Part shown: positions 32,501-35,394 of the stretch, piece after piece
Numbering within the stretch: the stretch's first letter is position 1
How the letters are laid out: each line of letters begins with the position of its first letter
Translations under genes and position numbers: made by a program
Origin: Saccostrea echinata
Lineage: Eukaryota
DNA length: 64,000 nucleotides
Direction of reading: 5' to 3'
Assembly: GCF_033153115.1 (NCBI RefSeq)
Contig: NW_026889803.1
Location: 2,046,001-2,110,000, forward strand
The notes under the pieces: model-generated
The model's database searches: none
What the model was told of the DNA's origin: nothing
The model's input: only the letters and a program-made list of their open reading frames with translations

Positions 32501-35394
32501 GCAGACCTTTTTTGTATTCATATGAAGCAGAATTTGTCCAAAACCTTATACGTGAAAAGAAGAAAACACTTGCCGTGGCCTTCAACTCGACATTTAGATA
32601 TATCGACGACGTATTGTCAATTCACAATTGTTATTTCCATTCTTATGTCGATACGATATATTCCGGTGAGCTTGAGATAGAATATACCACAGAGTCTGAC
32701 ACATCTGTTTCATGTTTGGATATTTTACTTGAAAAAGACGTTAATGGTAATCTAACAACCAAGCTTTATGATAAACGTGATGACTTTAACTTTTCAATCG
32801 TCAACTTCCCTTACTTATGCAGAATATACCTTCATTACCTGCATACGGAGTTTATATCTCTCAGTTGATTCGATACGCAAGAGCATGCTCTACGTATGTA
32901 CAATTTCTAAAACGAGGTAAATTATTGACAAACAAGTTGATGAAACAAGGATATCAGCTGTCTCGTGTAAAGTCATCATTTCGTAAGTTCTATGGTCGAT
33001 ACAATGACCTTGTCAGCAAATACAATTTATCATTGAGTCAAATGCTGACTGACGTTTTTCATACTAATTGTTAGGCAATTATTTACAAACTGAATTGTCG
33101 ACGGATTTTTCCGTTATTTCCCGATCATGACAAGGAGCATAAGGCGGGTGTGACCGGCCGGCAGGGGATACTCACTCCTCCATGGCACCTGATCCCACCT
33201 CTGATGTTTTGGAGGTTCGTGTTTGCTCTGCACCTATTTTGTAATGTTTAATGGAATTTTGAGCTTGGATACTGTTCGTTATCTCCATATATTTCATTTA
33301 AACTTTTTTACATAATTATAAAGAATTATATTTATTCCATGATTACATTTAGTTAAATCTGATTAAGGTTAAAATGATTAACATAAAAATTACAATTTAA
33401 GTGCAAAAAGATCAAGTTAATCGTACCGTTGCTCAGTAAGATGCACACTGACCCCCATTTTTCTTTGCATTTTTGAGTCATGTTATATGAATAGTTATCT
33501 TAGATATATACTTCTCAAAAAATCCTTGATATAACTCACATCACGAGTGACATACCATTAAAAAACCTGTCAGATAACTTTAATATCCGAATAATAATTA
33601 AAAACCTGTCAGATAACTATCATATCTGAATAATACTTAAAAACCTATCAGATATATGTAACTATAATATCTGAATGATAATTAAATACCTGTCAGTTAA
33701 CTATAATATCTGAATAATAATAATTAAAAACCTGTCAGAAAACTATAATATCTGAATAATAATTGGTGAATCATGAGTATGTAAATTACGATTATGGAAA
33801 GAATATTGCCTTACCTTTAGATTTGTGTCCTTGGCATTCCATAGATTCCCAGTAGTACATACTCTGTAAACGTTGTTACCAATACTTTTTAAGAATGGTG
33901 AGAAGGGTTTTGAAATTCCAAGAGATATAAGAACGCCTATCTTAAAAAATATATAAAAATAAAATAAATAATAAATTAATAAATTTAAATTTAAAAAAAA
34001 ATTGTCACCAATGAGTTGCCACACTGTAAATATTATTATTAAAAGTATCCTATGCCAAATTCTATTTCATTAATTATCGCCCGCATGGCACAATGATTAG
34101 AGTGTTTGCTTTAGCGTCGCAAATTCGAATCCACTGTGCGATGTGGAGACCCCGGGTGAGACTGTATAAACCTTGGTCCTGTATCGCAATAGGTGCTTGC
34201 AGGAAAAAGATTCTTTACTGTTCAAATTTCATAAGTGCCAAGTACAGGTCTAAATTTGCAGCCTCCACCGGCAAGTAGTGGCGTTTCAAGATGAGGGGAA
34301 AATTCTCAAAGAGACGTTAAACAACCAACCAACCAACCAAAGTTTTATTAGTTATTACGTGTACTTATTTTCGCCTGTTGAAAATTTAGCGCAAATGCTG
34401 GCCATGGACTAGATGGTGTAATCTTGGATTTGTGGTTTACAATACATTATTTTGTTAAATCTTATTTTTTCTGTGACCAGGAATTAGCGCACTTCTGATT
34501 GCATAAAAGGCACATAAATATGATCCTTATAAAACAACAAGTGCACTCACAGTTTTCAAGTTAAGAAATAGATGCCCCTTCGGTTATAGCAAATATCAAA
34601 GAAATGCCGCGGCCATTTTACTCCAATAAATCACAAACGTCATCAACAAATTCACTCTTTCATCTGAGAGAGGAACGAACGACAACTCTGCATAGGAGAT
34701 TGCAATAAATTATCAGTAAATTTTGACTGCTTTCACGAAGAAAAGACTATTGGCATCTTTTGACTGTGAGTCAAACCGATGAGTAAAAAGTTTTGATTCG
34801 GACCACATCGCACTTTTTCTAATGCGTGAAGTGAAAAAGAACGAGGAGTAGCATCGTGACCTCATATAACATTTCTGTTGACATTGAAGTCTAGATTCTG
34901 TTTCTCTATAAAGTAATTTTTTCCCTTAAAAATCGCCTTGGCAGAGGAGAAATATTCTCTTGTAGTCGGAATTATTGGAGAACATACCCAATGGTCGCGA
35001 GATTTTGTTGGAAAAGAAAAACCTTGCCCTTCCGACTCGGTTTTTATTTCCCAACTTAATCTCTGGATTATATCAAGGTATTTCTCCAAGAATTCCTCCA
35101 ACGACAAGGGAAAAATTTCTTGAATGATTACCGCGGCATTTCTTTGTTCTTTGCAATAACGTGATAGTGTACCAATACTATCAAAACTACCCTGTCTATT
35201 ATGCTCCAATCAATTCAAATCGATTTTATCACAAGAAAATTGTAACTCACAAAATGACCAAGGCCTTTTAAACACCCCTCCATGACTCGGAGACTAAGCT
35301 TTTCCTCAATAGGTTCCGGTACCCTTACATCCAGATAAAAGGATAATATAACACAGAAGACTATGATAATTAAGGTACAGAAATATATATTCAT
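26768..35394 (-). CDS. AADAC/NCEH1-like carboxylesterase, copy 2, 415 aa
   Basis: Exons 35394-35251, 33940-33815, 28012-27889, 27787-27724, 27557-26768. Exon lengths equal copy 1 (144/126/124/64/790) and the same catalytic motifs are present. Intron 2 is expanded to ~5.8 kb by nested insertions. Confidence 0.92.
28126..29346 (+). mobile_element. Insertion with a 141-bp perfect palindrome and a decayed ORF fragment (Crypton-like, tentative)
   Basis: Flanked by a GATATAA direct repeat (28119-28125 and 29340-29346) and absent from copy 1. Palindrome at 28162-28302. Acidic ORF remnant ending DDRFGKFNDDDDMEK. Confidence 0.55.
29354..30731 (+). mobile_element. Non-autonomous Helentron-type element (HINE-like) carrying an internal ~165-175 bp satellite array
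   Basis: 5' TTTTTAGCTCATCTGAG with a subterminal IR (CTCAGGTGAGC near the 3' end), a (GTCC/GTCT)n microsatellite, tandem units marked by AATCATGACCCC, and a 3' palindrome GGCCCATGGGCC. Inserted in a T-run and absent from copy 1. Confidence 0.85.
30997..33556. mobile_element. Non-autonomous TIR DNA element (Kolobok-like, tentative) hosting the Naiad copy
   Basis: Imperfect TIRs GGTATGTCtttCGT ... ACGagtGACATACC. Interrupts the GTGTTAAAA site seen intact in copy 1 (~18006). Confidence 0.6.
31648..33298 (+). mobile_element. Naiad-type PLE copy, 5'-truncated and frameshifted
   Basis: Near-identical to 19785-21430 in the opposite orientation. Split into four ORFs by frameshifts and carries the same 3' tail. 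Confidence 0.88.
33557..33762. repeat. ~39-40 bp minisatellite, about 5 units
   Basis: Unit ATTAAAAACCTGTCAGATAACTATAATATCTGAATAATA. A single related copy lies at ~18010-18050. Confidence 0.85.
34078..34340 (+). mobile_element. tRNA-derived SINE, paralogous to 18343-18634
   Basis: Same intron position in copy 2 and an (AACC)n tail. The insertion predates the duplication. Confidence 0.75.

Follow-up and report, generated by a model that had tools for sequence, protein, structure and literature searches.

A strongly covarying, pseudoknotted RNA fold in the 3' untranslated region of one branch of Naiad Penelope-like retrotransposons from an oyster genome and related marine DNA

How Penelope-like elements (PLEs) choose their template, and why they insert as tandem or inverted arrays, is poorly understood. 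Naiads are the most abundant PLEs in bivalves and lack the hammerhead ribozyme found in the pseudo-LTRs (pLTRs) of other PLEs (PMC8557442), and no cis-acting RNA has been described for them. Which RNA signal, if any, do they carry instead? Here we examine a conserved GC-rich motif that recurs in a window of 64,000 bp of Saccostrea echinata (assembly GCF_033153115.1, contig NW_026889803.1, positions 2,046,001 to 2,110,000, forward strand). The original prediction listed six copies, with a conserved structured RNA at the 3' end of Naiad-type PLEs that might be a self-cleaving RNA other than a hammerhead or a telomerase-RNA-like structure bound by the reverse transcriptase (RT).

The observation itself held. 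A 27-nt core pattern found 4 copies at up to 3 mismatches (0 expected by chance), and a covariance model built on the motif (R1) found exactly the six predicted places, the next best hit in the window scoring 13 bits. The copies, which belong to at least three subfamilies, and the associated coding remnants are:

33128..33236 (+), structured RNA domain, a slightly decayed copy with three changes in helix P1b (88.0 bits, E = 1.2e-20)
31651..33071 (+), degenerate (frameshifted), 5'-truncated Naiad RT coding region upstream of that copy
33075..33297 (+), whole 3' UTR of that Naiad copy, following the stop codon TAG at 33072-33074
19846..19953 (-), second copy, in the best preserved family-A copy in the window (97.6 bits)
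20010..21431 (-), intact 474-aa RT part of a 5'-truncated Naiad ORF, with VPVDKAGNNIV (the DKA motif) and YIDD
41744..41853 (+), third copy, with only the last 49 codons of the ORF kept upstream (82.6 bits)
46366..46477 (-), fourth copy, subfamily B, with no RT remnant upstream (122.8 bits)
55758..55871 (+), fifth copy, from a divergent subfamily, with an RT remnant upstream at 55352-55612 that is 57% identical (78.2 bits)
54846..54914 (+), sixth, partial copy, with the P2 interior deleted (33.4 bits)

The host element has the features of the Naiad clade. A tblastn search with the 474-aa ORF gave 82-92% identity in four frame-shifted pieces at 31651..33071, and the DKA motif is the Naiad variant of DKG (PMC8557442). 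Longer homologues add an N-terminal GIY-YIG remnant and the CxC linker motif (C.C..S.F.Y.P.GH.ITGDL). The window copies keep only the RT part, but a full-length relative that carries the motif (metagenome locus L091, 77% RT identity) encodes 1025 aa with a GIY-YIG domain at aa 157-246 (24.3 bits, Pfam cut-off 22.6) followed by RVT_1 at aa 669-877. In L091 the motif occurs both after the ORF and upstream, ending about 75 nt before the ATG of the next unit of the tandem. A head-to-head pair lies in the window at 19785-21431 / 31651-33297, and a (TA)n flank is seen at locus L008; tandem and inverted arrangements and (TA)n-biased targets are Naiad traits.

The motif lies 69 nt before a fixed 3' terminus. 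The 3' UTR at 33075..33297 contains an upstream hairpin (ACGGA/TCCGT, 33101-33114), the structured domain, a U/G-rich tail and the terminus ...ATATATTTCAT at 33297. Of 30 family-A copies fetched, all 28 that contained the anchor sequence used to locate the end stop at the same base, within 1 nt, and then diverge. In the genome, 74 of 90 motif loci have the RT C-terminus directly upstream, with variable 5' truncation. The copies in one genome keep the motif partly for a trivial reason, because 5'-truncated copies always retain the 3' end. The rest of the ~220-nt 3' UTR, including the U/G-rich tail, is also conserved between subfamilies, and the flanks have therefore not simply drifted, as had been proposed.

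Within this genome the evidence for structure is only suggestive. Single-sequence folding energies were not better than those of shuffles (z = -0.4 to +1.5), and RNAalifold on 59 genomic copies found only 8 pairs at -2.2 kcal/mol, because decayed copies and indels blur the signal. The originally predicted structure is compatible with the genomic copies but barely covaries: 11 pairs change on both sides against 8.4 in shuffles, a value reached by 83 of 500 shuffles, and the covariation amounts to two compensatory pairs between two subfamilies. A covariance search of the whole genome returned at least 150 copies, the top 150 being near-consensus. We therefore fetched 80 RT-related loci from metagenome contigs, of which about 22, all with 53-77% RT identity, carry the motif just after the stop codon. 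In these the motif always lies on the ORF strand, within roughly 30-160 nt after the last aligned RT residue. The resulting architecture, in the coordinates of the copy at 33128..33236 (+), is as follows:

33135..33139 (+), P1a 5' strand GAGCA, pairing with TGCTC at 33224-33228
33140..33144 (+), P1b 5' strand, CACGG in most family-A copies and TAAGG here, pairing with 33217-33221 (CCGTG in most copies, TCGTG here)
33145..33151 (+), P2 5' strand CGGGTGT, pairing with GCACCTG at 33185-33191
33151..33160 (+), palindrome A, TGACCGGTCA in most subfamily-B copies and in L091, TGACCGGCCG in this copy
33165..33169 (+), pseudoknot 5' strand GGGAT, pairing with ATCCC at 33192-33196, just 3' of the P2 3' strand
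33180..33185 (+), palindrome B, CCATGG here
33197..33216 (+), P3 hairpin, in which ACCTCTGA (33197-33204) pairs with TTTGGAGGT (positions 33209-33216) around a loop at 33205-33208

The structure is demonstrated only once these other lineages are added. Across 32 distinct sequences 89.3% of cells are paired, against 32-47% when partners are slid; 24 of 29 pairs change on both sides (19.2 in shuffles), and the covariation score is 0.531 against 0.225, which none of 500 shuffles reaches. All 4 pairs of P1a change on both sides (GC/AU/UA/CG), all 5 pairs of P1b are compensatory with 96-99% of cells paired, and all 8 pairs of P3 change on both sides, its sequence being entirely different in three of the loci (L102, L101 and L098). 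P2 is nearly invariant and 92-99% paired, with a conserved G·U in 26 of 29 sequences. The pseudoknot columns were not part of the model's structure, yet about 92% of cells are paired and all 5 pairs change on both sides with 3-5 pair types each, which is the best independent covariation. Two of our alignments (A5 and A6) were fitted to the nested helices, though not to the pseudoknot or the palindromes, and the number of independent lineages is modest. An unbiased MI-APC scan of all 6216 column pairs placed P1a, P1b, P3, pseudoknot and palindrome-A pairs at the top, with a P1a pair (8-151) ranking first and four of the five pseudoknot pairs among the top 21. About 11% of paired cells are G·U, including two near-invariant G·U pairs in P2 that would be A·C mismatches on the other strand, which identifies the structure as sense-strand RNA.

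The two palindromes, of 8-10 nt and 6 nt, are fixed in position and change sequence while remaining self-complementary. At palindrome A there are 11 distinct perfect 10-nt palindromes across lineages, and the mean longest palindrome is 7.48 nt against 3.62 nt in shuffles. Its central, adjacent bases, which cannot pair within one molecule, are AT, TA, CG or GC in 25 of 30 sequences and rank 2nd of the 6216 column pairs, which points to RNA-RNA dimerisation. Palindrome B occurs as CCATGG, CCTAGG, TCCGGA, TTCCGGAA, ACCGGT and TCGCGA, with a mean of 4.81 nt against 3.23 nt in shuffles (maximum over 5000 shuffles, 4.37 nt). RNAcofold always favoured a dimer and cannot discriminate a real dimer from generic domain swapping. 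A general test for GC-rich palindromes in all Naiad 3' UTRs against coding controls gave 33 of 73 against 19 of 73, which is not convincing, and our claim is therefore restricted to the positionally fixed palindromes.

The original interpretation was thus partly supported. The motif is a conserved, covarying structured RNA in the 3' UTR of a hammerhead-less Naiad; the outer stems, the CGGGTGT/GCACCTG stem and the variable third hairpin are correct, and the GGGAT/ATCCC pairing, mentioned only as a possibility, is a true pseudoknot. The proposed inner hairpin AGGGG-N7-CTCCT is not supported, being only 72-76% paired with almost no compensatory change, and we reject it in favour of the pseudoknot. 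The motif is also not a general property of Naiad-type PLEs: among the loci examined, all those with RT identity below about 52% and some at 55-61% (L095, L097, L106 and L167) lack it, and a second covariance model (R2), run with filters off, found no hit on 30 divergent loci. It is therefore not essential to Naiad retrotransposition in general.

The fold does not correspond to an RNA family in Rfam. Rfam searches at gathering and relaxed thresholds (E up to 10 for the window, up to 1 for seven other loci) gave no match to any family, including hammerhead, HDV-like, twister, twister-sister, pistol, hatchet, hairpin and VS ribozymes, telomerase RNAs and the R2 element. The hammerhead core CUGANGA...GAAA is absent; CTGATG occurs only in the subfamily-A P3 stem and is replaced in other lineages, and the helix topology differs from that of hammerheads, with a pseudoknot between the P2 loop and the 3' junction. 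The strand order P1-P2-PalA-PK-P2'-PK'-P3-P1' does not map onto the nested double pseudoknot of HDV-like ribozymes (P1-P2-P3-P1.1-P4, with a catalytic C) and also differs from the pistol fold. SECIS elements are present in some clam and spider Naiads, but Rfam gave no SECIS hit for the window, ATGA before P1a exists only in subfamily A and is absent in B, and the 474-aa RT ORF has no in-frame TGA. We found no prior description of the motif, and a full-text search for its core 16-mer found no paper.

We interpret the motif as a cis-acting RNA domain of one Naiad subclade, most likely an RT-recognition and positioning element, possibly dimeric (probability about 0.5). The architecture is what the data show: a two-part closing helix (P1a/P1b) encloses the nearly invariant P2 (CGGGUG/CACCUG), an H-type pseudoknot between the P2 loop (GGGAU) and the junction just 3' of P2 (AUCCC), and the variable hairpin P3, while invariant unpaired stretches (CAG, GCUUAC) and the two self-complementary segments lie inside the P2 loop. 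The function, including RT binding, a requirement in target-primed reverse transcription (TPRT) and physical dimer formation, is inferred from position and analogy. In this view, the RT-EN protein of the element would recognise the domain and thereby be positioned to start cDNA synthesis at a fixed site 69 nt downstream, which would become the 3' end of every new copy; because of tandem insertion the domain is also present in the upstream pLTR. The palindromes would let two element RNAs pair symmetrically, which would match a dimeric RT-EN that nicks and extends both DNA strands, and would help the template switching that produces the partial tandem and head-to-head insertions typical of PLEs.

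The RT-loading reading is favoured by the fixed 3' terminus and by the Poseidon PLE PAc (Frangieh et al. 2024, PMC11167929). In PAc, RT initiates internally at an AC-rich stem-loop next to a protein-binding RNA segment in the repeated pLTR/UTR region of tandem units, the cDNA start defines the 3' end of the copy, the protein is predicted to be a dimer, both strands are cleaved and extended, and the hammerhead is dispensable in vitro. However, PAc belongs to another clade with a C-terminal EN, its signal lies within the first 172 nt of the ORF beside a hammerhead, no pseudoknot, covariation model or palindromes were described, and no sequence similarity was seen here. The proteins of 'stringent' non-LTR retrotransposons also recognise structured 3' UTR RNAs followed by a single-stranded tail, such as the two-stem-loop core of R2 and the stem-loop of zebrafish LINE-2 (PMC11194090), and use them to choose and position the template for TPRT, with structure conserved more than sequence. 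Their RT lineage is different, and the Naiad domain is a helix-closed pseudoknot with long invariant stretches and self-complementary segments, 69 nt upstream of the presumed cDNA start. Telomerase RNA likewise has a helix-enclosed domain containing a pseudoknot, bound by TERT, the sister group of PLE RTs (PMC8557442), whereas RT binding is only presumed for the Naiad domain; no template region or template-like repeat and no triple-helix signature was identified here, and the resemblance is topological only. Retroviral dimer-initiation/linkage sites are self-complementary sequences that vary between lineages yet stay palindromic, as expected if two genomic RNAs pair; here the segments lie inside a pseudoknotted 3' UTR domain of a non-LTR-like element.

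Other explanations appear less likely. A self-cleaving ribozyme of an undescribed class, replacing the hammerhead of other PLEs and processing multimeric or read-through transcripts, remains possible, since the domain occupies the region where canonical PLEs carry hammerheads, lies upstream of the ORF in tandem units, and is a compact pseudoknotted fold with invariant unpaired nucleotides and an invariant G·U, as is typical of small ribozymes. However, no Rfam ribozyme family matched at E up to 10 for the window and up to 1 for the other loci, cleavage would not explain the palindromes, and in the one PLE studied the hammerhead itself is dispensable for insertion and needs protein (PMC11167929). 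Three raw-read RNA-seq runs covered the motif, with depth falling to 0 after 33316, and showed no place where reads begin or end, but this is weak evidence because the libraries are unstranded, poly(A)-selected, fragmented and multi-copy, and most reads come from copies embedded in other transcripts. A DNA-level role is similarly doubtful, either as a promoter or TSS module of the pLTR or as a binding site for a dimeric protein such as the endonuclease homing into its own copies. In its favour, the TSS of Penelope and Chlamys lies in the pLTR (PMC8557442), the motif precedes the ATG in L091, perfect palindromes are classical sites for dimeric DNA-binding proteins, and the invariant CACCTG is an E-box-like hexamer. 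However, DNA recognition does not select for helices (P1a, P1b, P3 and the pseudoknot) that keep their pairing, with G·U pairs, while changing sequence completely, and at least 11 palindrome sequences among fairly close RT lineages would need repeated co-evolution of protein specificity.

An mRNA-level role unrelated to reverse transcription, such as a translation enhancer or IRES-like leader for the downstream ORF, or a stability, export or localisation signal, would fit the presence of the motif in both the 5' leader and the 3' UTR of full-length units, and structured UTR elements often have such roles. Nothing specific supports it, however; the fixed cDNA start and the retention of the motif in all 5'-truncated copies point to the retrotransposition step, and self-complementary segments would remain unexplained. 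That the similarity reflects only the recent common origin of copies, with chance stems in GC-rich sequence, would agree with the young copies and the unremarkable statistics within this genome, but it is refuted by lineages with only 53-65% RT identity whose helix sequences are fully replaced with pairing preserved.

More tentatively, the domain may be a symmetric homodimerisation and RT-loading module, in which two Naiad RNAs pair through both palindromes, recruit a dimeric RT-EN, and are copied from both nicked DNA strands or by template switching. This would give a physical explanation for the long-unexplained partial-tandem (pLTR) and head-to-head insertions of PLEs; that the same fold is also a new protein-assisted ribozyme class is a further, non-exclusive possibility. 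The domain of ~110 nt, with its covariation-backed structure, fixed distance to the presumed cDNA start and candidate dimerisation sites, provides a concrete RNA to test with purified protein, as was done for PAc, a covariance model for annotating tens of thousands of copies, and a possible minimal template tag for PLE-based insertion tools. Among the protein homologues of the element, one has a C-terminal extension that looks like a read-through of the motif.

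The structured RNA motif of the original prediction, placed at 33134-33229, was confirmed: the sequence is as described, and a 27-nt core of it occurs four times in the window at up to 3 mismatches, against 0 expected by chance. A covariance model built from genomic copies (R1) and run with filters off recovered exactly the six places that had been listed in the 64-kb window, with scores of 78-123 bits for the five full copies and 33 bits for the partial copy, whereas the next best hit scored 13 bits. The genome (923 Mb) holds thousands of copies.

The motif follows a 474-aa open RT frame, which carries the Naiad-diagnostic DKA motif and YIDD, and also the decayed inverted twin of this frame. 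The relevant features of the window are:

21431-20010 (minus strand), the 474-aa open RT frame
31651-33071 (plus strand), its decayed inverted twin
33072-33074 (plus strand), the stop codon
33134-33229 (plus strand), the predicted motif
33297 (plus strand), the 3' terminus of the element
1-519 (minus strand), another, much more divergent RT fragment (about 41% identical to the 474-aa ORF) at the left edge of the window, with its 3' end outside it

Longer homologues add the CxC motif and a GIY-YIG remnant at the N-terminus, and a full-length relative that carries the motif, the metagenome locus L091, encodes 1025 aa with an N-terminal GIY-YIG above the Pfam cut-off and a C-terminal RT. This is the Naiad architecture of Craig et al. 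2021 (PMC8557442), who report that Naiads lack canonical hammerheads. In a term search of that paper, we found no description of a 3' UTR RNA structure, apart from SECIS elements in four selenoprotein families.

All 28 subfamily-A copies that could be scored end at the same base, ...ATATATTTCAT (33297 in the window), and then diverge. The domain therefore lies in the middle of a ~223-nt 3' UTR, 69 nt before a fixed 3' terminus. Of 90 genomic motif loci, 74 have the RT C-terminus directly upstream with variable 5' truncation, which also gives a trivial reason why every fragment keeps the motif. Between the stop codon and the domain (window 33075-33127, and the equivalent stretch in the metagenome loci L092, L098, L113 and L152), short repeated words of the type (T)TACCGAA(T)TAGAC / ACCGGATTTG recur in several lineages, and in the window and L091 this region is occupied by a covarying hairpin (ACGGA/TCCGT <-> ACGGG/CCCGT).

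Within this genome, the structural evidence is limited. Single-sequence folds were no better than shuffles, and RNAalifold on 59 genomic copies was almost empty. The helices of the original prediction are compatible with the genomic copies (90.7% of cells paired, against about 47% when partners are slid), but covariation rests on two compensatory pairs that separate subfamilies A and B, and on this evidence alone the claim of covariation would be weak.

We therefore searched metagenome contigs, whose source species are not known, with an RT alignment and obtained 80 loci with 35-77% RT identity. Model R1, the re-trained model R2 and a simple anchor pattern found the motif in about 22 of these loci, all with an RT identity of at least about 53%, and always on the ORF strand, within roughly 30-160 nt after the last aligned RT residue. 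Loci below about 52% identity, and some at 55-61% (L095, L097, L106, L167), lacked it even with filters off. The motif, which had been ascribed to Naiad-type PLEs, therefore marks a subclade and not all Naiads. A database protein (P0017) that is 63% identical to the window RT runs on past the usual C-terminus for ~140 aa, into a stretch (…GVACQQGTLTLPDTWFRPPFWD…) that by eye looks like a translation of the homologous 3' UTR motif in another genome and is probably a gene-caller read-through.

Covariation across lineages was assessed on an alignment of 32 distinct rows (A6) with the pseudoknot written in. In total, 89.3% of cells were paired, against 32-47% with partners slid; 24 of 29 pairs changed on both sides, against 19.2 in shuffles; and the covariation score was 0.531, against 0.225, and was reached by 0 of 500 shuffles. 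The nested helices in A6, as in the alignment A5, were aligned by a model that contains them. Helix P1b was 96% paired, with all five pairs compensatory, and P1a and P3 were fully compensatory, P3 having completely different sequences in the metagenome loci L098, L101 and L102. P2 (CGGGUG/CACCUG) was nearly invariant, with a G·U kept in 26 of 29 sequences. The columns of the pseudoknot GGGAU/AUCCC were not part of the model's structure, so that the alignment is not fitted to it; it was about 92% paired, with 3-5 pair types at every position (examples are AGGAT/ATCCT, GAAAT/ATTTC, GATCT/AGATC, AGACT/AGTCT, GAGTT/AACTC, ATCAC/GTGAT and AGGAC/GTCCT). The inner hairpin of the original prediction was only 72-76% paired, with almost no compensation; it overlaps the pseudoknot strand and was rejected. 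About 11% of paired cells were G·U, so the fold belongs to the sense strand. An MI-APC scan of all 6216 column pairs, blind to structure, placed P1a, P1b, P3, pseudoknot and palindrome pairs at the top, and 11 of the top 40 pairs are in the proposed structure, against about 0.2 expected.

The alignment also revealed a new feature. Directly after the P2 5' strand lies an 8-10-nt segment that differs between lineages but is nearly always a perfect palindrome; the 10-mers are TGACCGGTCA, CCACATGTGG, CCGTATACGG, TCCTGCAGGA, CCACTAGTGG, GCACTAGTGC, TTTCATGAAA, TTGCATGCAA, TCTTATAAGA, TCTATATAGA and TCTAATTAGA. The mean longest palindrome at this position was 7.48 nt, against 3.62 in shuffles (maximum over 5000 shuffles, 4.96). 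The two central, adjacent bases covary as AT, TA, CG or GC, and this pair ranks second of all column pairs. Adjacent bases cannot pair within one strand, and the constraint is therefore either intermolecular pairing or a DNA-level palindrome. A second, 6-8-nt palindrome sits just before the P2 3' strand, with the variants CCATGG, CCTAGG, TCCGGA, TTCCGGAA, ACCGGT and TCGCGA.

There was no Rfam hit at any threshold, in the window or in seven other loci, and this included telomerase RNA and the R2 element. We found no conserved hammerhead core and no SECIS features, and the strand order does not match the HDV-like or pistol folds. The core 16-mer occurred in no paper of the library searched, and literature searches found no description of this RNA.

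Three oligo-dT RNA-seq runs of the same species cover the element, and depth stops at its 3' end. The libraries are unstranded, and more than 80% of the placed reads continue into unlike sequence; no place where molecules begin or end was detected. This shows that the sequence is present in RNA and gives no support for a cleavage site, but does not exclude one. Depth peaks at about 300 at 33180-33213, against 50-150 around it, on the most conserved part of the domain (P2 3' strand, pseudoknot 3' strand, P3). The peak probably arises because reads from many subfamilies pass the 92% likeness filter only there, and does not indicate a stable RNA fragment.

The interpretation in the original prediction, a conserved, covarying structured RNA that may be a non-hammerhead ribozyme or an RT-loading signal, is supported in part. 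The analysis itself establishes the fold, its strand, its position in the 3' UTR and, in tandem units, in the upstream pLTR about 75 nt before the ATG, and the fixed 3' terminus 69 nt downstream, whereas the function is inferred. In the Poseidon PLE PAc, RT starts internally at a stem-loop next to a protein-binding RNA segment, the protein is predicted to be a dimer and it cleaves and extends both strands, and the hammerhead is dispensable in vitro (PMC11167929). R2 and LINE-2 use structured 3' UTR RNAs to select their template (PMC11194090). By analogy, the Naiad domain is most likely the RT-EN recognition and positioning element, and the palindromes suggest that it works as an RNA dimer, which would fit a dimeric RNP and could favour the template switching or twin priming behind the tandem and head-to-head insertions. 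A new self-cleaving ribozyme remains possible but is unlikely, and a DNA-level role and another mRNA-level role are each slightly less likely still.

The window itself holds such a head-to-head pair, at 19785-21431 (minus strand) and 31651-33297 (plus strand). These two 5'-truncated copies of the same Naiad have their 3' ends outward, are both truncated at the same ORF position and are 96-98% complementary. About 10 kb separates them, including duplicated alpha/beta-hydrolase (Abhydrolase_3) genes at 16361-17242 and 26768-27610, and the arrangement could be a PLE-style inverted insertion later split apart, or part of a larger inverted segmental duplication. In the tandem unit L091 (positions 1-140 and 3267-3448), the 3' UTR of the upstream copy runs to within about 10 nt of the ATG of the next 1025-aa ORF. 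The full-length ORF therefore has almost no 5' UTR of its own and must be transcribed from, or through, the pLTR that holds the structured domain.

A second, different 3' UTR motif occurs in other Naiad lineages (RT 43-61% identical), of which only four sequences were seen, in the metagenome loci L095 (368-538), L097 (3366-3536), L117 (1827-1997) and L167 (3184-3354). It has the form GCGGGAGGTTT-[palindrome]-...AAAAC...-AACCCACC, followed in three of the four by a CCTG-TACCAAGT-CAGG hairpin, and the palindrome again varies while staying self-complementary (GGCATGCC, GGCGCC, GGCGCGCC).
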